A stretch of 64,000 nt of DNA, from assembly GCA_964247055.1 (NCBI GenBank), contig OZ176057.1:3968001-4032000 (forward strand). Direction: 5' to 3'. Origin of the DNA: Paragordius varius (lineage: Eukaryota > Animalia > Nematomorpha). The position numbers and the translations under genes were made by a program. Below the pieces are notes generated by a model. It saw nothing but the letters and a program-made list of their open reading frames with translations, was not told where the DNA came from and ran no database searches. Positions 9,670 through 64,000 of the stretch are shown here, piece after piece (position 1 is the stretch's first letter; the number at the start of each line of letters is the position of its first letter).

Positions 9670-9786
9670 TAGATTACTAAATGATATTTTCTAAAACAAG
9701 TTTATACTCTATCATTAATTTCTTTACACAGATAATCGAGAATATGTCTACTATTTTTCAAACGGGTGTTTATATGGTATTTTTAA

Positions 9787-17800: not shown

Positions 17801-18363
17801 TAATTTTACCAAGTGATAAATAAAGAGTCAACTATCTAACACTCGAATATTGATAATTTTAATTTTTATCAAATAATTCACATTTAGTCTTTACTATATT
17901 ATTGTACTAAGATATGTTCCATTTTTTTTCGGCGGGCCATGCATAAAGTTTCGAAGGCCCATATGTTGGATACCCCTGGTTTAACATATTAATTATCCTT
18001 TGATAACAAAATAAATTTTCTGTCAAATTATTTTTTAGAATATGCCCTGTATTTTTCCCACAAAGGTATTAAGGGTTATTTGCCTTAAGTCATAATAATA
18101 ATAATAATAGATGTCATATTTTAAACATGACATAATAAACTTAATTAAAAATTTTATAAAGTATGCATATTTATCAGTGGTTATCAAACCTCACAGCCTA
18201 TGGGGCCCATGGCCATCCATGAATTATTTATTACATTTTTTTAATGTACTAATTTTGAGTCTAAATATCTGCAAATGTATTCGACAGCTATGAAAAAAAT
18301 TTTATCGTTATCACGAGAAAAATATATTATTTCGGTCCTTCAAAATTTTTTACTGAATACCAT

Positions 18364-18399
<36 letters not shown>

Positions 18400-26822: not shown

Positions 26823-26927
26823 TTAGAGAGAATAAGCTTTTATCCCGAAATGCTTAGTAATTTGCTCCAAAAACACAAAAGTTAATACAGTATGAGGGGC
26901 TAACCTAGTAAAGGCTGGTATGTAACC
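26823..26927 (-). CDS. SLC25A10: SLC25A10 exon 10 (terminal)
   Basis: GYIPAFTRLAPHTVLTFVFLEQITKHFGIKAYSL*. Confidence 0.95.
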   Translation of the reverse strand, partial: GYIPAFTRLAPHTVLTFVFLEQITKHFGIKAYSL

Positions 26928-29900
26928 CTATTTAAATAAATATAATGAGTCAAAATATAAAATTTGTGCTTAAAATTATATTATAAACAGTAAACATTGA
27001 AATTATATGGACAAAACGTAAAAATATAAAGACAATTTTTTTTCAAACGACAACCATATATACTTTTTTAAATCTATTATTGTCTAATAAAAATGAATTA
27101 ATTACAATTGTAAAATATCAATGGATTGTGTTATATTTTGCGGTTTAAAACATATCACTTATATTTTAGATAATTGAGATTAAAAATGTATGGCTGTCTT
27201 TTGATAAAAATATTTTCTTTATAGTTTCCATTTTGTCCTTATAACTTCAATCTTTAATATATATTATATATATAGCATTTAATGGATATTATAATTTTTT
27301 TTGAAAAGACTGTTTTTGTATTAAAAAATTTATATTCGATGTTTTTATATCAAAAAAAGAATAACGAATAGCATAATTATTCCATTTAAACTTCATATTC
27401 ACCCTAAAATAAATTATATTTTAAGATTAAAAATTAACTATATTTTTTAATATTGTTAAAAAATAAAACTTTATTTAAAATTAAAATAATACTAAAAATA
27501 TAATAAATTAGGCCATAAATAAATATTTCATATTAATGGTGAGTTATAAATAGCCCGAATCCACATAATTTAATTTTAGGGTGAATTTGAATCGTAAATC
27601 ATATATATACCCATAAATACATAAACAATTAATTTATACTAAAATTAAAAAAAACTATATTTTATTATAATTTATTAATTATCATTTGAAAATAAAAAAA
27701 CCCTTTAAGAAAAAGCATTAAATGCTAGAAAATAAAAATCATATAAACGATATGAGCCGTTTTATAGTTAAAGTTATCCTCTAATAAATGATGTCAAATT
27801 TTTAAAAATGGTTTTCGTACATAATAAAGTTTGAAGAATTTAGAAAAAGGTTAATTAAATCAATATTTTTTTTCAATAAAAACGGCAACTAGGAAAAAAT
27901 TAACTATATAATAATTGATTCCTTTTATATTCTATGTCAATGTAATATAAATAATTAACCAGCATTTTTTTCTTAAAAAAGTAAAAAATTGAAATTCTAA
28001 GGACAAAACAACGTAAAAATATATAAAGATACAAATATTTTTTTTTCAAAAAGACAACCATACTTTTTTAGGCCTCCTTAATTTTTCCCATATAAAATAT
28101 TAAATCAAAATTGTAAATTATATAATTGATTGTGTTACCAATATACATTTAACCTACATACTTTGCAATTCAAACAATAAGTTTTATTCAACTAATTCAA
28201 GATTCAAAGTATGGTTAAGAAAATTACGCATTATATATTAAAATTTATTTAAAATTAAGATAAAATTCAATGATAAAATATAAATTTTTAATTTTCAACT
28301 TTTATTGTATAATTTTCGGGAAAGACTTGACAATAAAAGTCGAAATTTATTTTTTTATCACATACGCATTATACCTTAATTTCAAATAAATCAAGATTAA
28401 TCGTATGTTTGTCTTTTGGGAAAAATATTTTCTTTATTTTTACGTTTTGTCCGTATAATTTTAATTTTTAATGTAATTTTTTAATTTATTATATAGAAAT
28501 ATTAAAAAATATTTACCTTATAAAATCCCAAAATTCCTGCATCAGATTGTAAAACCTTTTGGGCGCAATCGAATATTCCCTAAAAATAGAAATTTTATAT
28601 GTAAAATAAAATAGTAAACATTTTTTGATGGAAATAAATGGTTTTTTCTTTCATTAAAATAAAATAGTAAACATTTTTTGATGAAAAAAAATGGTTTTTT
28701 CTATCATTCTCTGTAATGATAATATAAATAGCAATACTATTATTTTATTTGAGCACAAATAAATTTATGTGGGCAGAAATAAATAATTAGAGGTGTCATT
28801 ATTTACACAAAGATATATTTAAAAATACAATGGGACATTCTGACCGAAAAAGTTGAAAGCAAAAATGACATCGATTCAACATAACCTTAACCTTTTTAAT
28901 AAAACAATTTTTAGGTTATATTAAATTTTTAGTATTAAATGAAAAAAATCGCCTTATATTACCACGAAATAGAAATATTATGTGCTGTAAATTAATTCGT
29001 GGTATGGAATGCGGAGTACTACCCTATACGATGATGATAAATTTTTATTATTAAATGTTTTCTACATAATGTTAAATTGTTAAAAAGTTGGAACCACCTT
29101 TGTTATAGGATATATATATATATATATATATATACTCTAAAACTAAAAAAACAACATTTATTTTGTAAGAGCATTAATTTTCATCTTATCAAATAAATCT
29201 TTATATAAATTTAAGGGGTTGGTTGTTATATAAAATCATAAATTCACTATTATGGACACTTATTTAGAAAATGTAGTTGATTTTAAAATAAATCGAATAA
29301 AATTAAACCTTTGTTTAACTGAAGTGTCAACACGCGACCGGCAAAAAAATTTTAAAATTGATAATTTGCAAAAATATGTTTATAAGATTTTAGCAAAATT
29401 GATATTTCTTAAACAATTTAATTCTAAATAAGTCTATTCAATTAGCAAGAACTAGCAAAAAATTATAATATTGTGTTAACATTTTGCACTGTTTTTACAT
29501 ATGGAATCAAATAAATTTTTTATGAATGTTATATATATATATATATGTATTTAAAACGCGGACAAGAACTCTTTGTGTTAGACATTCGTGGTTTAAAACA
29601 TGAAAAAAAAATATAATTTTACAGTAAAAATTGAAATTATACGGACAAACCGTAATAATATAAAGACAAATATTTTTATCTAGACAAACATTAAACCTTA
29701 ATTTTTCTTAGATAGCATATTTAGTTACAATAATTGTAAAATATAGAATTGATTGTGTTTGTAATTTATATCTGTATTTCAATCTTTGCCATTATATTGA
29801 AATAAAAAACAAAATTTAAGAAGTATGGTTGGTTGTTTAGAAAAAAATATTTGTCTTTATTTTTTTGCGTTTTGTCTCAGTTTTTACTATATATTTCTCA

Positions 29901-32668
29901 CTCTCATTACTTTATATTCATTGGGTTTGGCATTCATCATGCGTGTTTTTAGAACATCCAAAGGCTGAGTTAAGGTTGTAGCTATTATACTCTATAAATC
30001 AAATTGAGATAAAAAATTCACATTAAAAACAATTTATCTAAATAAAGTGTAGCAAGTAAAAAAAAATTTTTTTTTGTAAATAAACCAAATTTTTAATAGT
30101 ACTTTGTTTTGATAAATGATATAATTATAATATAACTATCGTTTTAATTGATTTGTTTGATGGTATTCAATTAAAAATATTTGCAATCTCATCAAACAGC
30201 TATAAAATATTTATCAAAATATGAATAAGTTAACGTACTATTTACGATTAAAATTCACCCTTGAACAATTCAAACTCACCCTAAAATAATTATCTGTTTT
30301 CGGACTAATATAACTCATCATAGATATGATAAATATTTTTACGACATAGTTTATTATTTTTTAAGCATTATATTAATTTTCGACAGAATTTCATATTTTA
30401 AAAATAATATAGATAGAGATTTTTAATTTTAAAAACCTATTTTATTTTAGAATGAATATAAAATGTTCGAGGGTCAATTTGAATTGTTCAAGGGTAAATT
30501 TGACCTGTAAATGGTATAGTAAATTTATTTATATATATCATACAAATTAAAGTAAAATTAGGGTGGTTAAAAAAATTATAGATAGGAAAAAATTATTGAA
30601 ACAATTTCTATCAAAAGTATAGAGGTACTTAGAGTAAATAATTGAAATTACACGGACAAAACGTAAAAATATAACGACAAATATTTTTTTAAAAACTTTC
30701 TTAAAAAACCTTGATTATTTGTAGTGATTGTTTTAAACTGCAAAATATAAAATAGAGACATATATTGGTTACACAATCCCTTATATATTTTACGAATGAA
30801 ATTAATTGATTTCCGTAGGATAAATATAAATTAAAAAAAGTATAATGGTTGTATTTTGAAAAAAAATATTGTCCCTATATTTTCACGTTTTTTGTCCGTA
30901 AAATTTTAATTTTTACTGTACATGTATTTTCACAAATATTACATTGTGAATTTGAAAAATAAAATTTAGAAAATAAAAAATTTTCAACAATATATTTGAT
31001 TACTTACAGCAGAAACGCTAGAAATAATATGGGTTTCAACGTTATCCGGTCTATGAGCGTATTGCAGTAACATTTGCTTAATTTGATCGTAAAAAGCCAA
31101 CTATATATAAACAAACCGAATAAAGAAAAAAATTATTTATTTTAATACTCCTAATCAATTTTTTACAATTTAAAACATTGTATTTTTGGAAAAAAAGTTT
31201 CATCAAAATATATATATACATACTTTCATTTCAAATAAATTATTTTTCAAAAAAATTCAATTTCGGCTATGAATAAGAAATATTATCAAAATAAAATTAC
31301 TACCTAGCTACCTACATACATGCCTATTTAAAAAATTATAAATACAAATTATTTTTGAGAAAAAAGCTAATATATATAAACAGTGACATTGAATTAATCA
31401 TTTAATGTCATCAGAAACCAACAATATTTTATTATATGGTCTTAATTTGAAGCGAGAGTGCCCAACATAAATGGAAAATAAATCAACAGTAAAAATTGAA
31501 ATTATACGGACAAAACGTAATAAAGACAAAAAATTTTTTCAACAGTCAACCATACTTTTATAAACCTCCTTAATTGATCCTATAAAATCATTCAATTACA
31601 ATTGTAATTTACATAATTGATTGCGTTACCAATTTACATATTGTTTCATATCTTTACATTTAAATAATGATTTATATTACGAAAAATCAAATTTTAAAAT
31701 GTATAATTGTCTTTTAGAAAAAAATATTTGTCTTTGTACTTTTGTCCGTAAAATTTTTATTTTTACTGTATATAGAAACTGTACTGTTTAATTTTTACAT
31801 GAATTATGTATAAAAAAAACTTTTAAATTTTTTTTTAAAAAAGTATACTTTCTTGACTAAAAGCCGTAATATTATCTTTAGGACCTTAATTTTTTAAAAA
31901 AAAATATTTTTAATAAGAATATATTAAAACAGATATATACCATTTAGAGTTCAAACTCACCCTCAAATTTATATTCCTTGAACAATTTATATTCACCCTA
32001 AAAATAAATTATGTGTTTTTGAAGTAATTAACTAATATAAAATATAATAGCATAGTTTTTATTTTTTTCGTATTATCTTAATTTAAAACAAAATTTTATT
32101 TTTTGATAATATACATATATATATATATATATATATTTAGGTTTTTTATCTTAAAAAACATACAATTTTTTTGTGGATTTTAAATTGTTTGAGAGTGAAT
32201 TTGAATTTTAAATGGTATATTGTACAATAATTTCCTTTAAATAAAAAATATGATTTGACACAACTTAAATCTTATTTTGCTGCTGTTTAACTAAAAAGCG
32301 TTTATTAAAACAAATTTTATAAAAACTTGAGAAATTTTATTAAATGATTCAAAACATGTTAGATTAGGACTAAAATATTTATGTTGCCAAAAAATGAAAT
32401 ATTATTAAAAAAAACTTTGGGTAAAATACATATATAAATTCACCCTAAAAATAAATTATGAGTTTTCGGGCACTATTATAACTCATTATCTATATGAAAT
32501 ATTTCTTTATGGCATTACTATATTGTTTTTTCAGTATTATTTCAATTTTAAACAAAATTATACTTTTTGAAAATAAAAAAATATAGGTACTTTTTAATTT
32601 TTAAAAAACACATAATTTATTTTAGTGTAAATTTGTGTTTTTAAGGGTGAATCTTAAAGGTAAAAGGG

Positions 32669-32712
<44 letters not shown>

Positions 32713-35700
32713 ACCTGACCCACAGTCATAAATATTCCACGCGTAATGGCCATAGTAACCCCATTAAACAGTTTGGGGATCCCTTCAACCCTTGCTACAC
32801 GATAAAGTCCATCAAAAGCGTTTCCATAACTAAATTTTTATTAAATAAAAAAATGCAATTTCATGTTTTTGATAAAAAGAATTTTTTTACGTAAAAAATA
32901 TATTTATTAACGTTTTGTATGAATGATTTTTATTTTGTCATTTTTTTCGTATCAAAATTTTTAATTAAAATACATTTTATAATAAATAAGATAAATAATG
33001 AATTTACCGATTTTTTTTTCCATACATAAGATATAATATAATTGCGTTGTTAAAGATAAAATTAAGTTATTTTTTTAACAATTCTATTTTTGTTGATATT
33101 GCATTATATTATTCTAAAAACGTTAATAAAATTATATTTTGATAAGAAATATAATATAATTTTGTCTGTACGTTCTAACTTAATAAAATTTCAAATTTTT
33201 TGTCTTTATAATACCGTGTGCATTTTAATGGTTGCTTATTTTATACACACTATAGTTGGGCAATTTGCAACACACAGTAGTGTATGGAAAAAAACAACAA
33301 AATGTTAGAATAAACAATTTTTTCCATTCTTTTTTCCATACTACACTACTGTGTGTTGCCGATTGCCCAACTATAGTGTGTGTGAAATAAGAAACCATTC
33401 ATTAAAATGCATACTGTAAATGTATTATAGTACAGAGATGAGAGCTATCAAAAAACCTAAAAGAATCTACATGTAAACATGCCATGTATGAAATATTTCA
33501 TTTTATTAATTCCATATTTATTCACAAAAAAAGGGAATTCAAATAAAAATGGAAAATCTTATTAATAGCAACACATACATTAAATCTCCTATTCGCCAAT
33601 TTAACAAATGAAAACCCTAAAAATAGGATTAGTGTTATAACTGTAATACTGTACAAGGTGTTTAAAAAAAGTGTAACATAGTTTATAAACTTACTTTCGA
33701 CGCTTTTCAAACGGCAATTTAACATCATTTTGCATTCTACAATGATTAAAAAAAATTATAATTATATTGCAATCTTAAGAACATATATTAGAATATACCT
33801 ATATATAAAAAACCTAATAATTGTTATTGGACATTAGAATAAATCTAAATATAGCAGCAAATAAAATCCTCAAATGAGGTTAGGTTAAACAAGGTAAAAT
33901 TCTTAACATTGATGGTTTTCAATCGTTTAGTTAAAACAAAAATTTTAGTCTTTAAAAAGTTTGATATATGACTAATTTTAGCATGAGAATTTAAATATTT
34001 TCTTTTCTAATATTTGAGTAGGAGAACTATTTTTATTAAAAATCAACCAAATTTTATTAATTTTATATATTATATATTTGTTAATCAATAAAATAATTTT
34101 TTTTAAGTAAAACAAAAGATGGTAAAAAAAGTTTAAAAAAATACCTTACATTGATAAGATCAGCCGGACTGCCAACAAAACCTCCCACAAGCCCAGAAAA
34201 AGATGCAAGACCCAATTTAACATACATGGGCAATGGGTATTCTATAAAAAAAATTTGGTTGACAATCAAAACTTAATTATATATTAAACATAAAATTGCT
34301 TTTTTGAACAAAAATGAGAGATCAGTTATCATCCTATAACAATTAAAATTTATGATTGAAAAAAAACGAATTATACCATTTACACTTCAAATAAATGCAT
34401 CACCTTAAAATAAATTATATGTTTTTTAACCTTAAAATATACCGATATTTTTATAGAATTTTATAAATTGTAATTTTGTTTAAAATTAAAATAATACTGA
34501 AAAATTAACATACTATGCCATAGAGATATATAGCATTTACACTTCAAGTTGGTTCTTGAACAATTCAAGTTGGTTCTTTGACATTTTTGTTTTGTTTTTA
34601 ACTTTTATCAATCAAATCGAAAATAATTCGTCTATTTTATTGTTTTTTACCTATTTTCTATTATTTAACATAAATTTTAAATCGATATCAACTTTTAATC
34701 TTTGAAAAACCGTATATCTTTATTAATTTCTAATAAATTTGGATATTTATAAGATTTTAACATGAAATGAAAAATTATATAAATTTTCTGGGTTATTAAT
34801 TAAAATTTTTCATTAAAAACATTTAAAAGTCAATTTTGTTCAATTGAAAAAAAATAGTTTGAATCAAAAAAGTGGTTTTTCAATAAAAAAATTTATTTTT
34901 AAATGAATAAATATATAATAAATAAAGAAAATTAGGTTAATAAATAATTAAATAAAAAAATAAATGCAAAAATTATGGTTAAATCAAAATTTATAAATTT
35001 TAAGGACCAACTTGAACTGTTCAAGGACCAACTTGAATTGTTCAAGGACCAACTTGAATTGTTCAAAGACCAACTTGAATTGTTCAAGGACACTCTTGAA
35101 GTGTAAATGGTATATTTTATGTTAATCACAAGTTATGCTAACCCGAAAAAACACAATATATTTAGGATGAATTTGAATTGTAAATGGTATATTACAAAAA
35201 GGAATACAGTATGCATTTTAATGGTTGCTTATTTCACAATTTACAACACAGTAGTGTATGGAAAAAAAGGAACAATTTATTTGTTGTTTTTTTCCATATA
35301 CTACTGTGTTGCAAATTGCCCAACTATAAAGTAATATAAGCCATCATTTAAAATGCTTACTATAAATGGTTTAAAATTTTGTCATCGACCCCAGTAAAAC
35401 ACATTAAATCAAATTTTAGAAAGGTAAATATTAAACATATTTCAACATATTCCAACATATCGCTTCATATTTTGACAAAACAACCCAAATTTTTATCGTA
35501 TAAACATAAAGAAAAACCGTGTGTTTCCTCAAACCCTCTAATAAAATATTTTATTAAACCTTACATTATAAGTAACTCTTAACAATTATAAATAATGTAT
35601 TGATCATTATAATTTAACAATTTTAAAAATTTAAAAAATTACCTTTATGCAGCAAATCATTATCGTAATTTTTATGATGAGTGGCTATGATATGTTGTTT

Positions 35701-37627
35701 AGAGACTTCATATACGGCAAATCTTGTGGTAGAATATGTTAGCTACAAAATGGATTTTTGTAAAAAATTTGAAATTATTATTTTTGGATGAATAAATATA
35801 GGTGTTCATTAAGATTCGATTCCAATGATTTAATAAATGTTTGTTTCTAGTTCATAACTTTTAAGGGTGGTTTTGACTCTACTTTGATAGATATTAAAAA
35901 ATTATAAAAAAATTTGTATATGCATTCTATGGCTAATTTTCATATTTGAATTATATATTCCACAATCGGTTCACTTTGGCATAGCGTCATGATGTAAGAC
36001 AACACTCCGGTTTTTTTAAAAAAATTCAAAAAATATATCGCTATAAATTAAAAAGATGATTGAATTTAGTTAAAAATAGTAGAAATCTTTAAAAAAAATT
36101 TTTTAAAATAATTCCTACAAAGTGCTTAGATTCACAGAGTTCATTATATACGTTCATGCCACTGTGTATCTTACGTTGTCGGATGGAGAATTATTTACAC
36201 AGTAGCAAATTTTTTCCCGTCCTTTACAGAGATGGCAACAGGACAGAGCTTTTCACAATGGCGAGAATAGGATCAATACCGCGTATTTTCTAAGGTTTCA
36301 ACATAGCTTTAAGAGAAAGATTTTCTTTCACAGCCAAGTCGTTAAAACTGCTACAGTTTTCATCCAATAGTATGCTGATAGAACCCTTTGATCCAAAATT
36401 ATTCATCGATAAACTTTCTCTCACCTCGGCCCTCATCAAGCGCCAATCAAATCGTAAACTACAGAGTAAATGGATCTTATATTTCGGACAAGTAACCTTG
36501 ATACAGTTTAAACATTTTTCTATTCTTCGATTTTCGAATGTTTCTCAGACAAGCCACACTTATATTATCGTATATATATATAAACATTCTAGAGTTTCTT
36601 ACGCAAATGTTGATAATTTCTAATGAAATTTCTTTCATTAATGTCCCAAAACACGAATTCGCGCAGTGGAGCAGGTATAACAAACTTCAACAAAAGCGTT
36701 TTTTGAGGCGACATCACGATCAGCGAGTAATCCATTTGATAGCTCTAAGATTCGATTTTGCGTTGAAATAAAAACATCAAACTTCGTATAAGTTTTTCAA
36801 GCGCGCTATCAGTAGAGTGACCCAGAAGAATTACATCCGCCTGCACCATTAACATATCTAACCACCTCGTACGCCGAAATTAAGCTATTGTGGTTAAACT
36901 TTCAAGGGTTAATTGGAATACCGTTCAAAATAATGTCGATATTCGATTATCTTATAATATCCAAAAAAATGGAACAGAGTAGGTGACACATTGCGCCTCG
37001 CCATTTGACTTAACCTTGCATAATTGCCCAACATTAGCCGTGCGTATCATGGCTAAAATCCTCGAGGCGCTTTAAATCAGATTTTTTAAGCAAACTTCAT
37101 GAAAAAACACAATCAAGCGCTTTCTCTGAATCATTGAAGACCGCAGCATACGTCACTTTTTCCGCTATTCTGAATTCCTTTGCGCCTCACATATAGCAAG
37201 TCGTTTATACTCTTATGTTTTCTAAACCCACACTGTGTATCGGAAAAGACGTTAAAAGTTTATAACTGGCGTTCCCAACTGCTCTGAGGATCTGTTAACT
37301 TAAGCAAGAGATAGAGGGCATCCCGACAGCCTTTATTCAAATATCCAATTCTACGCTTTGGGTGGGAACTACCCCTGACCCTCGACATTCCCCAAAAAAA
37401 AGTTTTCATGCTTGGAAACATAATCTGTGGCCGCTGTAAAATTACCATCCATAAAAGGTAGGAGGCAAAGAGTCAGAAGGGATCAAGAACAGTCTTTTGA
37501 ATTCGCGTCAAGCGATTGCCGTAGAACTTGGAAAGGTATGTTTTTTATCGCTGTACCGTGTTTGATGGTGGCAGCTTTTTGTGTGTTGTGTTGGTCTGAA
37601 TAATTTGCTTCAGAAATCTGTTTATCG

Positions 37628-37663
<36 letters not shown>

Positions 37664-40600
37664 CCATTTACAGTTCAAATTCACCCTTAAACAATTCAAA
37701 TTCACCCTTGAACAATTCAAATTCACCCTCGAACAATTCAAATTCACCCTTGAACAATTCAAATTCACCCTAAAAATAAATTATGTGTTTTCGAACTAAT
37801 ATAACTCATTATTAATGAGAAATATATCTTTATGGCATAGTTTATTATTTTTTCAGTATTATTTAAATTTAAAACAAAATTTTTATTTTTTAAAAATATA
37901 TAAAAATATTGGGTAATTTTTAATTTAAAAACATATATTTTATTTGAGGGTGAATTTGAATTGTTTAAGGGTGAATTTGAATTGTAAATGGTATATATAT
38001 ATATATATGTGCTGTTACAGTCGTCTGGCTAGCTGGCAATATAATTTTCTGCTATGCACTGAAATGACACCCAACGACGGGACTATATTGATGGTTCAAA
38101 ACGAATATTAACCGCGTTATAAATCAGTGAAATCGTTTTGCCGTATATCGATGCCAGAGGGAATAGACGTTAAAAGAGCATCAATAATATTAGCGACCTG
38201 TAGGTGTGGTACTTAACAGCTAATATACACATTTAATAGATCAAAAACATACTGTAATGAATACTAAATCGTTATAAACCTCCGATTTGATAACTTAAAA
38301 TTTTAGTTGTTAGTGTTTTTTTGGCTGCTCCCAGTATCATTTATACGTGAGGACCGTAAAGTCTGGCAGTTTGCGAATATACTAGAAGAGTTGTGAACGT
38401 CAGGTTAAGAAATTTTGACGTCTTGTCCGATACACAAGGTGGGTTCAGTAAGCAGAGGAGTACAATCATCTGATACCTGCAGACTAACGGAAAAAGTAAC
38501 GCAAGCGGTTTTCCTTGATTTAGAAAAGGCGATTGTTTTTCATGAAGCTCACTCAGACAACTGATTCGATTTAGTGTCCTCTGAGGTTTTAAGCCATGAT
38601 ACGAAGCTAATGTTGGGCAATAAGACAAGATCAAGTCCAATGGCAAGACCTCAAACTGGTTTAATTTGAAATGTGGAATAAGGCAAGGGTGCAAGGTGTC
38701 ACCTACTCTCTTAACATTTTTGGAGGCACCATTTTGGAAGGTATTCAAACCAAAGGGTCCAACCTAGTTAGCGTTAACTATCTTGCTTTTGCGGATATGG
38801 TTTATCTGGAACACTCTCTTGATTCCGACTATTTGATAAACTTGATAGTAGACTCCCGAATAAGATGTTATCATTTAAAATGAAAAAAACCCAAGTGTTG
38901 CTAAAATCCCGAAAATAGGTTTCCGATCGTGCTGAGAGGATATATTTAGATTATGCAAAGTTTTTCATATATTGGTTTTGTGTTAAGCAGAAGGGCGGAG
39001 AGTCTGAGGAAATTACCAACCGAATACAAAGAAAAAGGATTTTCACTTAGTTGATACCTTTATTCTCAAATTTAGTTATACAGCCTCGAAAATTGTCTTT
39101 TGTTGGAGTTTGTCATAGCTGTGCCATACTTTACGGATCCAAGTGTTGAATCCCTAATGTAAGATAAGTCTCAGGACAAAATCGTTTTATTAACACTTGC
39201 AGAAGGAGCTGCAACGTTTTAAAATACAATAAGTTAAGTGTGAATCGTCTGAGACATAGAGTCAAAGTTTCTTGCGCAAACCATGCTATCAAAGACATCA
39301 AGAACTTATGATCAAGCTTGTGCCAAATTGATTAAGCAAACATGTATAAACCAGTAGGGTTGGTTCGTCACTGTAAAACATAAAATAGTAGAGTATCCTG
39401 CAGCCAAATGCGTTTACGCGGTAGGTGCTTATAAAGAACTAGAAAATCTAGCGTGTATATTAAATCTCCATTTGATAACATAACATCGAAGTCGGACAAA
39501 CGTTTCCTATATCAACCCTGTAAATCTAAGCATCTGGGAAAGTTTTTTTTATAACAATAAATTTTTTTCTTTTACTTGAAAAAAAAAACTTTGCGACGTT
39601 TTTTAAATCGCTAAATGGGCAAGCCAAACCTTTTTTCGCAGATAGATATCGATGCATTGTAGCTAATTATTTGATTCGGATATTTTAAACTCTATTTAAA
39701 ATAAAAAAAACCCAAATCGTTTAGACACTTTGATTGGTGGATATTCATTTGTTTTAGTCGTCTGCCAAAATTATCCTTTAGGCATTTATTTATTTCTCTA
39801 TAAAATATTTGACTTTTCACGATTCCGGTCAGGTAAATTTAATTAATCATATATTTTATATTGAATCATATTAAAGAAAAAAATCAATTTTCCAAATAAA
39901 AAAACAAGAAATGATAAACAACTAATATTGCCAAAATATTTAAAATAAGTAAAAATCATCTATTAAATTAGGAAAATAAAAAATGGTGAAACTTTCATTT
40001 AAGAGCAAAAATAGATAATTATTTCCATTTTTTAACATTTTATATTATCTTTGATTATTAATTAATTAGCAATGACGATAGATTGGCGAACTTCGAACGC
40101 ATGCGGTTTTCTCATGCATAATAAAGTTTAAAAGGAAAACTGTGCGATTTTTTTCGCACAAAAGTTTGTAACATTATGAAAATAGTTGATAAACATTCTG
40201 AGTTTTTTAGAGCTGATGAAACATTTTTTATGTGTCCCGTGCACACTATAAAAGAGCTTTGACTCGATACGAGCAAATTTTTTAACAATCATGTTTTTAC
40301 TGCTATGTATTAAATGGATTTAGGTAACATTTTAAAATTGGTACATTTTTAGGGGTCTTTACATGGACTAATTAAAATAAAATAAACTACCAAAAGGTAT
40401 TTTGGTTAAAATTATCGAACATTATTTAATATTAAAGAAAATAAAATTAATTTTTCAGTTTTACTCTACAGCCTAAAATTTTAACTTTGTCGGAACGAAT
40501 TAAATACGAATATACAATTAACACTTGGATACAACACACTCATTTTAGTCCTTCGATTCAAATTGGGGTAGTTGGATACCCCAGGCCTGTTTAAAATCAA

Positions 40601-41871
40601 ATACTTTACAAAGTATGGAAGCAATCAAAACCATGGCAAAATTTTGCACTTACATAACATTAATAAATCGGAATATATAAAAAAATTTATTCAAAAATAC
40701 TTGATATTACTTATTTTGAGCTAAAACTGAAAGGTAAAAATTTGGTCACGTGACATGTGTCAAATTGTAAAATTAAAAAATGATACAAATTTCTATTTTT
40801 ATCAATGTTAGATGTAATTTTTATAAAAAATAAGCTTTAGTTTGACCCTTAAAATTAAATGAAGACGATATTTTGCAAAATTTTTGTAAAATAAAAATGG
40901 CGTCGAAGTAGTTTGAGATGAAACTTTTTTTGCAAAACAAAATTTTATCAAGATATTTTGGCATATTTATATAATATTTATCAGGATAGAAGCATAAATT
41001 TAAATTGGGACCGTTTCCTTCAGTAGTTTTTTAAAAATTTTAATTTAAATTTAGTCTGGGGTATTTAGATACCCCAATTTGAATCGAAGTGTTAAATCCA
41101 TTTTTAGATAATATGTTTTTTACATCTTTATTTTTATCAATTTTGAATTTTAAAAATTTTTCGGAAAAAAAGACTAGATGAGTTTCAACAAATTTACATT
41201 TAAAAAAATTGAATTTTAAATAATGCGCTTTAAAGGCCACCAAATTTTTACGATTTGCCCAATATCATTTAATCGCGCTAGGGTAGAAAACCAAAAGCTG
41301 TTTTAAATTTATTAATTACGTAAATTATTATATATAAAAACCTATGGGTACACACATATATATATTCATCTCTAAAATGATTTCAAAAAAAGCATAACTA
41401 TAATATTATAATTAAATGGGACCTTACAAGGAAAATTCTATAATTTATATTAAATTTAATAAAATTCAAAATAATCAATTTTAATTTTTATATTTTCTAT
41501 ATTTTTATTATAAAAATTGTGTACGTCGGTGTTTTTTTACATTGTCAATCATTAAATACGAAATGAATTTAAGATGTAATGAAGTGATAAACCTGTCTTA
41601 ATAGAGAAGCCGAAAGGCCATTGTAAAGAGCTAAAACACCTTGATTGCGAATAATTTGTTTAACTGCTGGAATGATATGTATTTTTCCAGTTTGTTGAGT
41701 TTGTAAATGCACCTATATATATAATGGCAAAATATAATTTATTAAAAAAATATAAAGATTATCTAAAAGAGTTTTAAGTACCTTAATTAAATCCAAAGGA
41801 TGTGTACAAATTGCTGCCCCGGCACTGGCTAATCCACCAAAATACCATCTTTGTTTGCGATTTTCAGGCAT
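26823..41871 (-). CDS. SLC25A10: Mitochondrial dicarboxylate carrier, complement join(41782-41871,41593-41712,35643-35742,34145-34241,33695-33736,32715-32829,31008-31100,29911-29991,28517-28579,26823-26927), 301 aa
   Basis: Complete spliced frame: MPENRKQRWYFGGLASAGAAICTHPLDLIK/VHLQTQQ...ALYNGLSASLLRQ/LTYSTTRFAVYE.../GSPADLINVR/MQNDVKLPFEKRRN/YGNAFDGLYRV...MTVGQ/LAFYDQIKQ.../TQPLDVLKTRMMN.../GIFDCA...GFYK/GYIPAFTRLAPHTVLTFVFLEQ...*. Three PxDxxK/N carrier motifs. All introns GT-AG; 906 nt in total. Confidence 0.96.
28517..28579 (-). CDS. SLC25A10: SLC25A10 exon 9
   Basis: GIFDCAQKVLQSDAGILGFYK. Confidence 0.93.
29911..29991 (-). CDS. SLC25A10: SLC25A10 exon 8
   Basis: SIIATTLTQPLDVLKTRMMNAKPNEYK. 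Confidence 0.95.
31008..31100 (-). CDS. SLC25A10: SLC25A10 exon 7
   Basis: LAFYDQIKQMLLQYAHRPDNVETHIISSVSA. Confidence 0.94.
32715..32829 (-). CDS. SLC25A10: SLC25A10 exon 6
   Basis: YGNAFDGLYRVARVEGIPKLFNGVTMAITRGIFMTVGQ. Confidence 0.95.
33695..33736 (-). CDS. SLC25A10: SLC25A10 exon 5
   Basis: MQNDVKLPFEKRRN. Confidence 0.93.
34145..34241 (-). CDS. SLC25A10: SLC25A10 exon 4
   Basis: EYPLPMYVKLGLASFSGLVGGFVGSPADLINVR. Confidence 0.95.
35643..35742 (-). CDS. SLC25A10: SLC25A10 exon 3
   Basis: LTYSTTRFAVYEVSKQHIIATHHKNYDNDLLHK. Confidence 0.93.
36100..37570 (-). mobile_element. Degenerate RTE-like non-LTR retrotransposon RT relic
   Basis: Broken RT motifs SDTQCGFRKHKSIND and AVFNDSEKALDCV; many stops and frameshifts; ends approximate. 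Confidence 0.65.
37664..37991. mobile_element. Family C MITE inserted in a (TA)n tract
   Basis: (TA)n|CCATTTACAGTTCAAATTCACCC ... TTGTAAATGG|(TA)n. Confidence 0.85.
38010..39560 (+). mobile_element. Degenerate RTE-like non-LTR retrotransposon RT relic
   Basis: DTQGGFSKQRST, AVFLDLEKA, GIRQGCKVSPTL, LAFAD and ILYGSKC motifs. Shares CCATGATACG..GCTAATGTTGGGCAAT with the - copy. Confidence 0.75.
40522..41091 (+). mobile_element. piggyBac-like MITE (TTAA TSD)
   Basis: TTAA|CACTTGGATAC...GAATCGAAGTG|TTAA; close to 6849-7391. Confidence 0.85.
41593..41712 (-). CDS. SLC25A10: SLC25A10 exon 2
   Basis: VHLQTQQTGKIHIIPAVKQIIRNQGVLALYNGLSASLLRQ. Confidence 0.95.
41782..41871 (-). CDS. SLC25A10: SLC25A10 exon 1
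   Basis: MPENRKQRWYFGGLASAGAAICTHPLDLIK|GTACTT. Confidence 0.95.
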
Positions 41872-47511: not shown

Positions 47512-47557
47512 TCATCTTCCCAAACCAAAGTTGAAACCTATATAGAAATATTACACA

Positions 47558-47594
<37 letters not shown>

Positions 47595-48474
47595 TAGCGT
47601 AAATCTCGTGCTGCTACGCAGTCCGAGGAAGTCCTTCGGACTTCTGGGGAGGGGGGGTTCGAAGTTTGGATTTGAATGGGTCTACCGGTTTTCCGGTAGC
47701 AGATCACAAAGTTACATGAGAAATCAGTTTTTAGCGGATAGCTCCCTACCCAGCAGCTATCATCAAAGAAGCGCCTGACTAAATTTGGTTAACAGGGAAT
47801 GCGTGGAATCCATATTGAATATTTACGGTTTCATACCTAGGGCGAAAAATAGATTTAAAAAATTATTTTTGTGGACTTTGTTTCTTGAATAAAATGGCAT
47901 TTTACGGGGGTAGCGGGTAAAAAGAGGGCCTAAATCAAAAAAGTGACTCGACTATGTTCGGCGCAATCGAAAATAAGTAAGCAAAAATCATATTTGAAAT
48001 TGAATGGTCCAACACGTTCTCCGGAAAATTGTCTCAAAGACACGATTTTTGTGGACTTCTGTTTTCAAAAAAACTCGTTTTTCACACGGGGTGGGCCCCA
48101 ACTGGGGGCCTATTTCAAAAAAAGGGCGAAGCTATTGTCGGGGGATTATATTTTTTCGAAGTCTGGATTTGAATTGGTCTACCGTTTTTCCAGTACCAGA
48201 TCATAAAGCCAGCATTTTCCATTTTTATAAATATATAGATTAAAATAATCTAGCTTAATATGGTAATGAATATTTTTTTTAAAAAACCAATAACTATATA
48301 TTATCAAAACTATTTTATAAAATTATTTCAAAATGGAGTTAAGTTTTATTTACGGTGTTGTTTTGGGTTATAGTTTTCCGCGTTAGGATTTTTCCCTTCT
48401 TCGCCTTTAGCTGACATGATAGCCATAAAAATTATCATCAAAGTTGGAATTAAGAGTAGTTTGTACAATTCCAT
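47512..48474 (-). CDS. Allatostatin-A/FGLamide-like neuropeptide precursor, complement join(48354-48474,47512-47537): MELYKLLLIPTLMIIFMAIMSAKGEEGKNPNAENYNPKQHRFNFGLGR*
   Basis: ATG at 48474 and a hydrophobic signal peptide. Donor C|GTAAAT (48353) and acceptor TTCTATATAG| (47538) are in matching phase 1. C-terminus is FxFGL-Gly-Arg-stop; AATAAA at 47466-61. An inverted paralog with the same exon structure corroborates it. Confidence 0.8.
47594..48239 (-). mobile_element. Non-autonomous Helitron, short complete form (in the intron of the FGLamide gene)
   Basis: 5' A|TC at 48239; 3' CTAG|T at 47594 with an AGTCCGA...TCGGACT hairpin ~22 bp upstream; no TSD. Confidence 0.85.
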
Positions 48475-49324
48475 GCTTATTTTCTTTATCGAAGCGCAAA
48501 AAAATATCAATAGGGTTTTGGAAAAAAGGCTAAAAATTTGGCAAAATAATTATATGAAATGCAAAAAAAGTTTTTTGCCTTTATATAGTTTTATTTTTCT
48601 AAGTAAAGGTGGGCTGTGCTCTTCTTTGAAAAATTTTAATTAATTTTTGGCAAAAGTATATATTATTTGATGTTTGACCAGGTGGGAACGGCTAATCATT
48701 ATCATGACTTGACCAAAAAATAATTAATTTCTATATGTATTTTATTTAAAGATCGATATTTTATTTCATATCCATATATTTTCCCTTTTAATTAACTCCT
48801 GACTTGGCATCTGTGCAAAAATTTAATAATTAAATAAACATCTTTTTTTCCTTATTCACGACGTATATTTAAACAGCTTAATTATTAACCTGGGTCGCTA
48901 CCCACACAATTCAATCGATACCAAAATACATTTTAAATATATTATATAGATGTTTATATATATCATAATAAAATAAAATTATTTAAGCATTCTAAATTTA
49001 TAAGTGCATAAATAGATTGCAATTTGGTTTTAAAATTGGGTTTAGGTTCTGTTCGTTTCTGAAACCAGATTTCTTAAGAGAACATATAATTAATTCCATG
49101 AAAAATGTGGGACTTCTTTGATTGAAAAAATCAGACAGAAAACAGCTAATTAATACTATCCTCGCTATAATAATTTCATTAAACAAATTAACCATGTCTA
49201 AAAGTATTCCTTACCATTTTCACCATTGTCCAAAATACCATAAGCTTACCAACATTTTTATCTATATCCATTTTTAAGCGAAATATCGATTTTTTCGGAA
49301 AAAGGTTTTTTGTCAATAACATAA

Positions 49325-49596: not shown

Positions 49597-51246
49597 TAAT
49601 AATAAAATTTTTATCGGGTAATATCGGCATTAAAGATCTTATTTTGGGATTTGCCCATCTTAGACGGTTCCAAAAAATTTTAGATTTTCAGAGTCAACAA
49701 AACTTATAAATTTTATAAAATTGTATTTTTAATACATATTTATCAATATTTTTTAAAATGCATTATTAAACTTTCAACAATTTTTTTTAGCAAAGTGTGC
49801 GAAAATTTTGCCATTTCCTGATCTAGACCAATTACGTTGATAGTGATAAAAACTTTCTTTTATTACCCTTATTTATACCAAGAGTACCATGATAATTGTG
49901 ATACATTTTTCTATTTGAATACATAAATTGTATCAGTATATCCCTCCGAATTTGTGCACAGTGTATATATAAAAATTATTTAAATAAATATATTGACGCA
50001 TTTCGTTTTTATTACTGCTTAGTGACGTGATATATCTTTCTTCTTTTAGCATCCTGTGTTAAAACGGTTTATATATGCTTCAGAAATTAGCATAAATTTC
50101 TAAAAAACTAATAAAATCTATATCATAACTATTAATTACTGTTAATACAACATTATAATTTTTTTATAATTTCTCATATTGCAAATTTTATCACCTTTTT
50201 CACCAATAAAATTCAGTGTTTGCTGGTCGAAAAAACACTTAAAATGAAATTTTTTAAACTGTTTTGTATTCCAATCTTAATACTTTTGTTGGCCCATTTG
50301 GATTAACCTAAAGAGCACGAGGAGGAAAAAAATGATGCCGACTCAAACAATATGCCTGTCAAACAATACCATAATATAATTTTTTTAGAAGTTACCATTA
50401 AATTCTTTGTTAATTGCATTTTTTAATTTAATAATGGATATATTGAGTAATTGGTTATTTACGCTTAATTATATAAAACCAATTTTAAAATGATCAATTT
50501 TTATAATTTCTCAATTTTAACGAAATTTCCAAAATATTAAAATGTTTTAAAAAGTTATTTAATCCTTTAACCCATTTTTTAATTTTTTTATTAATATTTT
50601 TGCAATAGACAAATAAAATTATTAATAAGTATTAGAATTATCATTGGACAAGATTTTATAAATCAAAATTTAACTAAACATATATATCACTGTGTTCAAA
50701 AAAGAGGGTTAATTTTTTTTAAAAAAAAAATTGTTTCATGAGATTGCTTATGACCAGTGAATTCATTTGCCCTAAAAATTTAATATGTTGACGACCTAGT
50801 TTTTGATATTGAGAGAACGAAATTAACAAAAATTAATTAAGGTTAATTAAGGATAATATAAAAAATAATGATAAAATTTGAGATAGTATGGTTTTATATT
50901 ATTTTAGAAGATTCCAATATATAAATAGCTTAAAATCAGGGTTTCCATAAAATCTCAGGTCAAAAGATGGCTTAACACACCAAAGAAATTTTTTTTAAAA
51001 CTATAATAAAATTACTTTTTTATTTACTAGTTAAACTCACTATTAAAGTCTAACATTAATATCTAATTCAGTAGAAAAAACTTATATATCAAAATAAATT
51101 AAAATATTGTTTTTTATTTTTTTGTCATCTTTGAGTGTAATCAAAATTTATACTGTTTTATTTGAGTAATTATAAAGTATATAATTACTAAAATAGGATT
51201 TAAAAGTATGGATATCAACCAAATATCATTACGAATCCCTCTAAAA

Positions 51247-53550
51247 CAGGGCTTCTTAAACTTTGGTAATTCTCGACCCCATTTATGATAGCGATTAACG
51301 ACCCCAACAATTCTAAAAACGTTTAGAAATTTTGATGATAATATTTATCAGAATTAGTATGGTTTTAAGAGATTGACAAAAATAAATCTACATTTTTTAT
51401 AAATTTATATAACATCTTCTGATAGATAGTAAAAATGATCGGTGGTCCCTTTTTAAAGGAAAGAATGATACTATACGAATTCCCCAGAAATGTGTTTAAC
51501 TGAACTCGTATGGCTTCTTAATTTTTTTGAAAATTAAATCTAAAACCACGTTATTTATATATGGCGTCTCAGTTTTAAACCGCTAGACCTCTACCCATAG
51601 ACCTATATGGAAAAAGCGCTGAGTCAAATTTTTTGCCTTTAATCGTTATATGATGGCGTATTTTTAGGGCATAAAGGCCCTAAATTAACGGCTAATAAAA
51701 ACGCCTGATTTTTTTACCTAGTTACGGATGTCTTTTTAAGCTTTTAATGATCTCATATGGTTTCATAATTTTCTGTAAATTAGCTCCAAAACAAAGCAAT
51801 TTCTATATAGTGGCGCTTTGGCGGATAGCTCCTAACCCAGGGGAGGTATAAAAAAGCGCTGGTTAAAATTGTTGCCCTCATATGGGGATTATCTGAAATT
51901 ATGATGGAATCCATTGTTCCTATTAGACTCATAGGTTTTCTGAAATTTGACTCCAAAGGCATGCTGTATCGAGATGGGGACGCAATTTTACGCGGGTAGC
52001 CTCTAACCAGGGGAGAAACAAAAAAACGCTCGATTAAATTTTTTGAATTCGGGTAATACCTGGAATCATGATTGATTCCATATGCTCTCGTAATGCCCCA
52101 ATCCCAAAAAGTCATTCTATGGTGACGCATTTTTCAGGGCAAGGGCCTAATTAAGGGGTAATTTAATAAAACCGCTCTACTCAAATTTTTGCCTTTTTTG
52201 TATAATATTTCAAGCCCTTATTGAATTATGGCCTGATAAGTTTTCTCCTCCAAAGTGATGCGGTATCGATATGGTGGCGCAGTTGTTGACGGGTAGCCCT
52301 ACTCAGAGGCCAATATAAAAAAGACGTTCATAAAAAATTTTGCCTTTATAGGGTTATAACTGGAATAATCATTCATGCCATATGTTTTTTATAGTTTTTG
52401 GAAGAATGGCTTCAAAACTAAATAATAGTTCATTGATAGCGCATTTTTAAGGGCGTTAAAAGCCTAATTAACGGGTAATTAAAAAAACCGCTGGACTTAA
52501 ATTTTTGACTTTTTACGAGTAATATTTCAGGCCCTTTTGAACTTATGTGGCCTGATAAATTTTCTGAAAATTAACTCTTAACTAACGTAATTTCGATATG
52601 GTGCAGTTTTAAGCGGGTAGCTTCCTACCCAGAGACTGATACAAAAAAGCGCTTGATTAAATATTCTTACGTTTTTACGGAGAATACCTGAGATCATTAT
52701 TATTGATTCCATATGCTCTCATTAGTTTTTGGAAAAATTGCCTTAAACTGAAAAATCATTTTATAGTGGCGTATTTTTCAGGGCGTGAATAAAAAATCGT
52801 ACGATCTAAATTTTTGCCTTGTTATGGGTAATATTTTAAGCACCTATTACACTCATATGGCCTGATAGGTTTTTTGAAATTTAGCCCCAAAGGCACCCTA
52901 TTTCCATATGACGGGGCAGTTTTTAGCTGGTATCTCCTTACCCAGCAGCTAATATAAAAAAACGCTCGACTAAAATTTTTGCCTTTTAACAGGGAATACC
53001 TAGAATCTTTATTGAATTTTACGGTCTTATACCTTGGGTGAAAAGAATCAAAAAATTATTTTTGTGGACTTTATTTTTTGAAAAAATGGCATTTTACGGA
53101 GGGAGCGGGTTAAGAGGGTCTAAATTAAAAATGCGAGCCGACTATGTTCGGCGCAATCGAAAATAACGAAACAAAAATTATATTTAAATTGAATGGTCTA
53201 ACACGTTCTCCGTAAAATTGTCTCAAAGACACGATTTTTGTAGACTTCTGTTTTCAAAAAAACCCGTTTTTTACACGGGGTGGGCCCTAACTGGGGGCCT
53301 AATTTAAAAATAGGGCGAAGCTATTGTCGTGGCATTTATTAATGAATATATTTTTTTGACATTTGGATATGAATGGGTCTACCGGTTTTCCGGAAACAGA
53401 TTACAAAGCCGCATTCTTCATTTTTATAAATATATAGATTTTACAAGTTAAAAAACATTTTTTGTTAAATTTTAATTTTATCACTCGCGACCCCATAATT
53501 TTGCTATTCGACCCTAAATGGGGTCGCGACACATCGTTTAAGAAGCCCTG
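51247..53550. mobile_element. hAT MITE with perfect 8-bp TSD, interrupted by a Helitron
   Basis: TIR CAGGGCTTCTTAAAC / GTTTAAGAAGCCCTG; CTCTAAAA at 51239-46 and 53551-58. Confidence 0.9.
51459..53438 (-). mobile_element. Non-autonomous Helitron, long form with internal array
   Basis: Colinear with 7650-9669; 5' A|TC at 53438. Confidence 0.75.
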
Positions 53551-54132: not shown

Positions 54133-54166
<34 letters not shown>

Positions 54167-55345
54167 GGATTCAGGTTTGGCTTGGGAAGATAACAGATGC
54201 ACCAAATAATCCACATTTTTTATCAATTGCACTAAAACCAATAAATATTCACTAAATTCATTATGCATATATTTTTCGTTATAAAATTTAAATTTGATAT
54301 CTCGATCCTAATTTACCCCATTTTTTAACCAGGTTATTGATACTCCTCTCGGCAGGTTAAAAATAAATCAGGAAGGCATATTCCATGGTACACCTAGGGT
54401 TGTGCCCACTAAGGCAACCTAGAAATAAAATGACCTAGGTCATTTTATAAATCGTACAAAAATTTTTAAAGTATTATTCTAAACCATTTTAAATATGTTT
54501 ATAAAACATAACTGGTTATACAATTACCAAAACTATGGAAATTTTTGTTAATGACAAATTTGTTATTCAATAATTGGCGATTAATCCTCTATGGCGTAAT
54601 TTTCGACCCCTCTTTTTTAGAAACTATATTCTTGATGTGGAAGACAATTATCAATCCTTACTGGTCAACCTTCTTTAAAATATTCACAGAAGCAATTATC
54701 GAGTTAAAGGCTTACTTCTTTGATAACATGTAATATGATACATGGAAGAAATAGGAAAGCTTGTTTGTAAAAAAATAATTAAGTTCCTATTTTGCAAATA
54801 ATTAGCTATGCAAGTGCCTGCACAAATTTTTACTGAATACGCCTCTTTAAATTTAGGGTAAGAGAAAAGCTAGAACTGGCACTAAACGGCAAAACAAATT
54901 TTTAGTAAGAGTATTATTGTTAAAATATTAGTTCATGTTTAAATCTATGACTTTTATGTATTTTTATACTATTTGCCGATAATAAATCGTGAATGTAGGC
55001 TGTTAAAGAGGTACACCTTAAGTGTCCCATCATTTTTTATATTAATAGATATAAATATAAATACACAGACAAAGATTTTATATTTATTAGTTAAAATTTT
55101 ATCTATGGCCTATATTTAACAGAAAAAATAAAAAATTTAATATCTCTGTAAAAAAAGATCTAAAATCTACAACAAAAAACCATTTGAATAGTTAATTTGA
55201 AAATATATTTTGCGATGAGAGAATACTTTTATCGACATTCAAAAGTTTTCAACTATGTTTAATATATTCTGAGTAAGTCATTTCCAAATGATGCTCATAA
55301 ATTTATTAAGTTATTATTAAATAAAAAAAATGTTTCAAAATTATA

Positions 55346-55778
55346 CCATTTACAGTTCAAATTCACCCTTAAACAATTCAAATTCACCCTTAAACAATTC
55401 AAATTCACCCTTAAACAATTCAAATTCACCCTTGAACAATTCAAATTCACCCTTGAACAATTCAAATTCACCCTCAAATAAATAACATGTTTTTTAAGAT
55501 TAAAAATTACCTATATTTTAATATATTTTTAAAAAATAAAATTTTGTTTTAAATTATAATAATACTGAAAAAAATAATTAATTATGCCATAAAGATATAT
55601 TTTATATTAATAATGAGTTATATTAATTCGAAAACACACAATTTATTTTAGGGTGAATTTGAATTGTTTGAGGGTGAATTTGAATTGTTCAAGGGCGAAT
55701 TTGAATTGTTTAAGGGTGAATTTGAATTGTTCAAGGGTGAATTTGAATTGTTTAAGGGTGAATTTGAACTGTAAATGG
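55346..55778. mobile_element. Family C MITE with ~5 x 21-bp units per arm
   Basis: TA|CCATTTACAG ... CTGTAAATGG|TA. Confidence 0.85.
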
Positions 55779-56615
55779 TATATATAAAAGCAAATGAAAT
55801 TGACAGAGAATATCTTGTTAGCTTCAAAATTTTTTATCTTTTGGCTTTTCATCCAGCGGGTCAATCAAACGCCTTGTAGCACTGACATCTGGTAGCTATC
55901 AAATAACATATTTATATATTAATAAGTGAATTCTGGATTTATCCATCAGATATTTTTAAACTTGATTCAACATTTTCCACCTAAAATACATAATGTGCTT
56001 TTGGACCAAAATGTAGTTTTTAATTTTATTTTTGGTGGATGGACAAACAGCTTTAAAATTCAAAAATTCTTCCATATAAAAAACACAAAAAAGTGTTAAA
56101 CAGCAACCGTTTTTTTAAAGATTTATGACAAAATATTTATCATTCATGAAAATGGCTAAAATATTTAAATTAAACACATAATGTAATAAATTTATCTGCT
56201 TGTGTCGCAATAAGGATCGATAAAAAGTAAACCGTTTAAAATGCCTGCCAAATCTATATTAAATTTATCGAGTTTGCAGTAGTTTTAAAGATATATAAAT
56301 GAAATTGAATTAACACTATTAAATATTAATTCATTGTACCAGCTTTTTGACTATAAATTAATCATATGGTTAATTGCACGCTATTTAGGATATATCTTTT
56401 CAAGAAAATTTTAAATTACGATATTTTATTTAATTCTCAATTATTTAAATATTATATTTTTTTAGGAAAATAGGTTAATTTTTTCCCATATATAACAGAT
56501 TACTATGTTTTGTAAATCAAAAAGTTTGGGAAGTATAAAACAAATTAAGAAATTGTTAACATTAACAAATTGATTTTTATGTCTTTAACAAATTACATTA
56601 GGAACTTTATGTTTA

Positions 56616-62555: not shown

Positions 62556-63070
62556 CTAGCATTAAGCAGCCCGAAAAAGTCCTTCGGACTGGGGGTGGGG
62601 GGGGGGGCTATTAAAAAAGGGACAATAAAATGATCCACATATGTGGATTATTTCGAAACATTATTTATTAGCTATGATCTCATAGGAATTTCAAAACGGT
62701 GCATTCATACTAATATATTGTTTACTTGGGCGAAAAATAAATTCAAACAATTACTTAAGATTTTTTTTGGAAAAATGACATTTTACGGGAGGAGCGGGTA
62801 AAGCGCAATCGAAAATAAGTAAAAAATCATATTTTAAATTGAATGGTCCATTTTCCAGAAAATTCTCTCAAAGACACGATTTCTGTGGACTTCTGTTTTC
62901 AAAAAAAACCGTTTTTTACACGGGGTAGGCCCGAACTGGGGGCCTAATATAAAAAAAGGGCCAAGTTGACGGGGTATTCATCAATGATTATTTCGACATT
63001 TGGATTTGAATGGATCTACCGGTTTCCCGGAAATAGATCACCAAGCTTTCCATTTTTATAAATATATAGA
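62556..63070 (-). mobile_element. Non-autonomous Helitron, short internally deleted form
   Basis: 3' CTAG|T at 62556 with a CAGTCCGA/TCGGGCTG hairpin; 5' A|TC at 63070. Confidence 0.8.
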
Positions 63071-64000
63071 TTATAAATGGTATGTTTGTTTTAAAAATGA
63101 TAATTGACAAAAACAATATAATTACCAATATATGATAATAAAAATAGAGGGAAACAATATATCTGGTTTTTATAAGATGTTGCGGTGCAGATAAAATCAT
63201 CACACGATCTTATGAAAGTTCTGTTCCTTAGCTTTTTAGAAAATATTACTATTTGACAGCAGGTAAAACTATGCGTTGATGAAGAAAAGATAGGTGAATG
63301 GATAGAAAATTATTCAAATGCCGACTTTGCTACAGTGTAAAATTCAAAAACAATTCAAATAGTTGTGAGTCTATCCAATCAATGGTATATGACGTGACAT
63401 AATTATTAAGAAATAATTACGCTAGACAACAAATTTTAACTTTTTTTAACTGCCATTCTTGTAAATTTAAAATTTATTTCATTAAAGTACATAATTAGTA
63501 TATCTGAAAAGAAAATTGGTCCTGCATGCAAGATTTTTTTTATATTAGAGATTATAGATAATTTTTGACCCCGATTTAACATTAAACTCGAAAGTTCGAA
63601 AATTAAAAGTTTTAGATATGAAGCCATGTATTTTATATCATTCGAAAGAGTGCAAAAAACTGCATCTTTAAAATGGTAGTAAGTCATTTAAATCAATCGG
63701 ATGTAAAAGTTATTTGGATTTAAATGGTCGAAATTCTCAATTCTTAAATAAGTCAAGAATTTTCACAGACAAAGTAATTTGAAAATCATAAATATTATTT
63801 TAATATAATTATTAGGGTTATATAAGTATTTAATTAAAAAAAAATGTTTGAAAAAGCTTTTGGTTTGCTTTTTTAATAAAAATTATTATTATCATAATTA
63901 ATTTACCTACTGGATACTAAAATGCATAGTTATAACTGTAAATTTACTACATAATGGCTATAAAAGATCAAAAAGACCTTAAACTTTGTTTTTATATTTA

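Follow-up and report, generated by a model that had tools for sequence, protein, structure and literature searches.

Gene A and its surroundings

The window, i.e., the whole stretch of 64,000 nucleotides of Paragordius varius DNA that was analysed, holds on its minus strand a small gene, hereafter gene A, whose letters read as two coding exons with 48 codons plus a stop and the C-terminal end KQHRFNFGL-G-R (Table 1). This spliced model, with its GT/AG junction and the AATAAA that follows, had been proposed in a first-pass annotation, and it is present in the DNA as described there. The intron ends in TTTCTATATAG and splits an Arg codon, and the F-N-F-G-L core is encoded entirely by exon 2. No ATG occurs in the 86 nt preceding the start codon. 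The signal peptide and polar spacer that the same annotation had claimed are supported by an h-region at residues 6-21 with a Kyte-Doolittle peak of 3.1 and by a polar remainder, the call being made from hydropathy and the -3/-1 pattern only. On both strands of the whole window, exon 1 is the sole ATG-started 40-codon open stretch that combines a signal-like h-region with a polar tail. Exon 1 alone is insufficient proof of the splice, because the unspliced RNA is also open, giving a 42-residue ORF that ends in KQHRK-stop. Among the acceptors within 3 kb, only this one leads to a Gly-basic-stop end.

Table 1. Positions of gene A, paralog B and neighbouring features in the window
Feature	Position	Strand	Remarks
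BUB1-like kinase exons	17065-17490, 20709-20855, 22834-22917, 23788-23946 (span 17065-23946)	+	match Gordionus protein at 31-65%
Mitochondrial carrier (SLC25A10-like) exons	26850-41871	-	weak Pfam Mito_carr matches, two exons
Gene A poly(A) signal AATAAA	47461..47466	-	45 nt after stop
Gene A coding exon 2, 26 nt including stop	47512..47537	-	Arg completed, then F-N-F-G-L-G-R-stop
Gene A intron, 816 nt, phase 1	47538..48353	-	GTAAAT...TATATAG; (TA)n tract directly 5' of acceptor
Dispersed repeat in gene A intron (~520 nt)	47725..48241		copies at 52917-53440, 9247-9670, 62803-63076; 81-83% identical
Gene A coding exon 1, 121 nt	48354..48474	-	predicted signal peptide (residues 1-21/22), polar spacer, end ...PKQH plus first base of Arg codon
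TATA-like box (TATATAA)	48581..48587	-	113 nt 5' of gene A ATG
Paralog B exon-1 homologue	50244..50370	+	signal-like stretch, acidic spacer, end ...VKQY; in-frame stop at codon 21; no GT at gene A donor position
Paralog B exon-2 homologue, 26 nt	54168..54193	+	after TAG acceptor and (TA)n tract; X-F-R-F-G-L-G-R-stop
Paralog B AATAAA	54240..54245	+	46 nt after stop

The splice sites of gene A are similar to those of the adjoining carrier gene, with a donor (GTAAAT) of moderate strength only, and its GC content of 0.35, compared with 0.37-0.41 in neighbouring exons, fits the genome. No KR, RR, KK or RK dibasic site occurs in gene A, which holds one peptide copy, and no second FGL motif lies in its intron or flanks; the earlier description of a minimal one-peptide precursor with a (Y/F)xFGL end and no dibasic site thus agrees with the reading of both exons. 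Searched separately, exon 1 returned no homologous protein, no Pfam family and only sub-threshold Atlas matches, and exon 2, with 8 residues, falls below a searchable length.

The possibility that a chance splice generated the motif can be quantified. An order-4 Markov model built on the window predicts 2.3e-5 occurrences per window, or ~0.09 per 250-Mb genome, of an acceptor followed by [FY]xFG[LI]G[KR] and a stop, whereas a degenerate search for the same pattern finds exactly two matches in the window and none in 100 shuffles. A chance splice is ruled out by these figures and, judged from the sequence, the gene A model is not a chance arrangement.

The kinase exon at 17065-17490 has one match among 1.84 billion protein representatives, a protein of Gordionus sp. 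m RMFG-2023 (Nematomorpha; E 5e-7, 46% identity), and further kinase exons match the Gordionus protein at 43-65%. The Gordionus gene spans ~58 kb (locus L001); at this locus the kinase orthologue is accompanied within 10 kb by neither a carrier nor an FGL exon, and the interval orthologous to gene A is not reached. Neither BUB1 nor SLC25 is named in the AstA synteny paper. GC-richer, decayed retroelement-like remnants lie within the carrier gene (36290-39400), and an inverted repeat of 525 nt (2735-3259 and 3762-4286) is 98% complementary across a 502-nt spacer. Tandem arrays of 21 bp at 21343-21720, 18624-18959, 19870-20205 and 55300-55812, often the inverted arms of miniature transposon-like elements, give rise to spurious repetitive ORFs.

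Paralog B and the conserved peptide end

A second copy, paralog B, lies head-to-head with gene A; its ATG is at 50244 (+), and 1.8 kb separates the two start codons. It is broken, and it was kept so and read with X at the breaks. A hidden micro-intron removing its stop was considered and rejected, as the region aligns gap-free with gene A by inspection. The homology of the two copies is nevertheless evident at both ends of the coding sequence: exon 1 of paralog B aligns to that of gene A with a score of 47, reached by 0 of 5000 shuffles, and the two second exons are identical at 21 of 26 nt, compared with 27-40% in their flanks. Intron phase and position, exon-2 length and poly(A) distance are common to both copies. 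The exon-2 frame of paralog B has no Pfam match. Upstream, the 5' flanks are colinear and in register up to the ATG, with a similarity reached by 0 of 300 shuffles but by 6 of 262 random segments of the window. The intron starts show a weak similarity (22 of 500 shuffles were as good), which was left out of the argument.

Both introns also carry insertions of the same dispersed repeat family, oriented oppositely with respect to the genes, and an insertion shared by the two introns was rejected on account of these orientations. A (TA)n tract lies 5' of both exon-2 acceptors (47561-47592 and 54133-54165), similar to a tract that follows a donor of the carrier gene near 32705.

Identity between gene A and paralog B is concentrated at the peptide end, with 8 of the last ten compared codons identical as against 12 of 35 upstream (Fisher p=0.014). 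Correspondingly, pN is 0.12 in the last ten codons vs. 0.36-0.47 elsewhere, and the divergence of the copies corresponds to a pS of about 0.5. The comparison covers one paralog pair and 10 codons; because pS is low there too (0.17, i.e., 1 change), these values do not demonstrate dN/dS < 1. Although the counts are small, this end-concentrated conservation is the strongest evidence that the two exons form one gene selected for its peptide end.

Comparison with allatostatin A and related peptides

Allatostatin A (AstA) is defined by the C-terminal Y/FxFGL-amide, and in arthropods one gene encodes 4 to >20 paracopies (PMC9263205). Gene A shares with the arthropod precursors the C-terminal (Y/F)-x-F-G-(L/I), here F-x-F-G-L with H-R before the core, an amide-donor Gly followed by a basic residue (G-R-stop in both gene A and paralog B), and an N-terminal signal peptide, predicted by hydropathy and the -3/-1 pattern. 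Unlike them, it comes from a non-panarthropod, encodes only 48 residues with a single copy, where the arthropod precursors have 4 to >20 paracopies set between dibasic sites, has no dibasic site at all and carries an intron inside the peptide. Moreover, AstA is a single gene per genome in arthropods, whereas two homologous loci, one of them broken, occur in this window. Since there is one copy and no dibasic site, gene A is named AstA-type here rather than a canonical AstA precursor.

The closest likeness is to Carausius SQHRFSFGL, which agrees with QHRFNFGL of gene A at 7 of 8 residues, and Periplaneta AstA10 (...SRFNFGL) contains the exact RFNFGL, with SPQGHRFSFGL as a further Periplaneta peptide (PMC9263205 supplement). 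Bombyx pERDMHRFSFGL-amide agrees at 6 of 7 residues over HRFSFGL (PMC3534322). Carausius IPMYDFGL is another late insect AstA paracopy. R-F-x-FGL, and even HRFxFGL, also occurs in chelicerates, as in Ixodes ERHRFGFGL and spider NRFAFGL (PMC9263205 supplement). As read from its residues, the peptide end of gene A is arthropod-canonical, and by this motif gene A would be expected to act like AstA. The matches in ticks and spiders mean, therefore, that the peptide indicates no particular host group.

Nematoda is the sister phylum of Nematomorpha. The nematode NLP-5/NLP-6 peptides, putative AstA orthologues with the receptor NPR-9, resemble the gene A situation in their amidated G-L/G-F ends and in having more than one precursor gene. 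However, their ends are MGL, MGF, FGF or AAF in multi-copy precursors, as opposed to (Y/F)xFGL in gene A (PMC9263205 supplement). Membership of gene A in NLP-5/NLP-6 was rejected, as it has neither an M-G-(L/F) or x-F-G-F amide nor a multi-copy precursor. Kisspeptin (NxFGLR[YF]-amide), whose family is related to the AstA system, has FGL in common with gene A (PMC9263205). Gene A, however, lacks the kisspeptin C-terminal R-Y/F-amide, and kisspeptin receptors are reported lost in Ecdysozoa; with an end reading F-G-L-G-R-stop rather than N-x-F-G-L-R-(Y/F)-amide, gene A was rejected as a member of this family as well. In rotifers, the AstA-like peptides have FASGL or YGGL at their C-terminus, and the NP-HMMer listing for Priapulus contains no AstA. 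Canonical AstA forms had been found only in arthropods and tardigrades, with none outside panarthropods as of a 2022 review (PMC9263205), and a literature search returned no published nematomorph neuropeptide set or paper. The peptide of gene A is closer to arthropod than to nematode peptides, a comparison that draws on arthropod and nematode sets and in which chelicerates match too.

A worm neuropeptide, a host mimic and other readings

Taken together, gene A is a real-looking micro-gene that appears to be selected for an AstA-type amide, in a phylum for which no AstA report was found. We give slightly better than even credence to the reading that it is an intact horsehair worm micro-gene for a one-copy AstA-type prepropeptide used as the worm's own neuropeptide. 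AstA receptors occur across the protostomes, and the related nlp-5/nlp-6 are present in nematodes (PMC9263205); an inherited AstA system is therefore to be expected in the worm. That the exact Y/FxFGL form was inherited along with it is something we infer, since the canonical form is unreported outside panarthropods and none is listed for Priapulus.

In the proposed mechanism, the gene A intron would be spliced, signal peptidase would cut after Ser21 or Ala22, carboxypeptidase E would remove Arg48, and PAM would then turn Gly47 into the amide. This order of signal cleavage, removal of the basic residue and Gly amidation is that of standard prohormone processing. The main product would be a 24-25-residue amide, which may be trimmed at Lys38 to pQHRFNFGL-amide or at Arg41 to FNFGL-amide. 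Lys38 is preceded by Pro and has no basic residue upstream, and cleavage at such a single Lys is, by convertase rules, not the favoured one of the three possible routes. Arg41 stands in a K-x-x-R context in gene A, and that Lys is kept in paralog B. All of these forms would keep the C-terminal pentapeptide. The first-pass annotation had expected an amide of ~22 residues or pQHRFNFGL-NH2, of which the length is revised to 24-25 residues and the Lys route is retained as one of the three. The likely target would be a worm GPCR of the AstA/NPR-9 type, on which the peptide would have an inhibitory, modulatory action. Instead of keeping one multi-copy precursor, this lineage seems to have dispersed the family over several genes of one or two peptides each, and these genes duplicate and are lost.

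The first-pass annotation had also suggested that the peptide could mimic a host hormone if its source were a parasite of arthropods and not itself an arthropod. The source is indeed a nematomorph; the kinase match to Gordionus, based on one gene, makes a horsehair worm other than Gordionus very probable. Accordingly worded, the proposal is that the juvenile worm releases the amide into the host haemocoel and activates the host AstA receptor, alone or in addition to an endogenous role, which would lower juvenile hormone synthesis, gut motility or activity and contribute to ovary suppression and castration. The arthropod-type end (7/8 Carausius, exact RFNFGL in Periplaneta AstA10, 6/7 Bombyx), unlike nematode MGL/MGF/FGF, agrees with this proposal, as does a minimal precursor that was locally duplicated with one copy lost. 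AstA has an inhibitory effect on juvenile hormone in Orthoptera and Dictyoptera. The proposal would also fit the observation that ovary development is inhibited and males are castrated in hosts of hairworms, by a mechanism described as largely unknown (PMC12456768). Documented doppelganger peptides of parasites and venomous animals (sialokinin, tick adrenomedullin, Ampulex venom tachykinin) resemble the predicted gene A product in being short secreted peptides that look like a host hormone and in their gene duplication. However, endogenous peptides usually conserve the active end, whereas several documented mimics evolve fastest there (PMC12962067). In gene A and paralog B the active region is the best conserved part and not accelerated (8/10 vs. 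12/35), the opposite of those mimics, although accelerated evolution is known from several cases and is perhaps not universal. The R-F-x-FGL and even HRFxFGL of ticks and spiders point to no particular host either. Some hairworms have beetles as hosts. Beetles are without AstA signalling (PMC9263205), which also speaks against the proposal. No AstA or hairworm example was found by term in two reviews of doppelganger peptides. Since the paralog comparison shows an endogenous-type pattern and the motif matches ticks and spiders besides insects, mimicry is a minority reading, unlikely but the foremost of the alternatives.

It is rather improbable that gene A originated as a real gene but departs from the model in its expression, i.e., that it is silent or decaying, or that exon 1 is left unspliced (42 residues, KQHRK) or joined elsewhere. 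The broken state of paralog B would be in keeping with decay, and the repeat insertion in the gene A intron, the many alternative YAG sites and the moderate donor GTAAAT with a different RNA. Against this, all elements of gene A are intact, the modelled acceptor is alone within 3 kb in producing a Gly-basic-stop end, and paralog B keeps the same junction geometry.

Quite improbable, too, is that gene A encodes a convergent, lineage-specific amide of another family that signals via a non-AstA receptor. Only five residues carry the assignment, and the architecture is unlike that of any AstA precursor, with no family model or homologue for exon 1; however, the match extends to 7-8 residues (QHRFxFGL), and neither kisspeptin (FGLR[YF]-amide) nor orcokinin-type ends fit.

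Least credible is horizontal transfer, in which the peptide end would derive from the AstA gene of an arthropod host and would have been rebuilt as a one-copy gene. Host-to-hairworm gene transfer has reportedly been described by Mishina et al. in 2023. The end does resemble late paracopies of insect precursors, and transfer is a recognised route to mimics (PMC12962067), but no link to an insect gene emerged at the DNA or protein level, and any transfer would have to be old because the intron inside the peptide has native-looking splice sites, the composition is native and the copies are far diverged (pS about 0.5).

If the mimic reading were true, gene A would provide a defined molecular effector by which hairworms castrate their hosts, and it would be an AstA doppelganger, of which no published example was found; this reading would allow the means by which hairworms castrate or alter a host to be tested directly and at low cost. 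If, as we favour, the peptide is the worm's own, a multi-copy precursor would have been broken up, unusually, into micro-genes. The canonical Y/FxFGL-amide would then reach beyond panarthropods, which would suggest a greater age for the arthropod form than has been assumed, with nematodes having departed from it.
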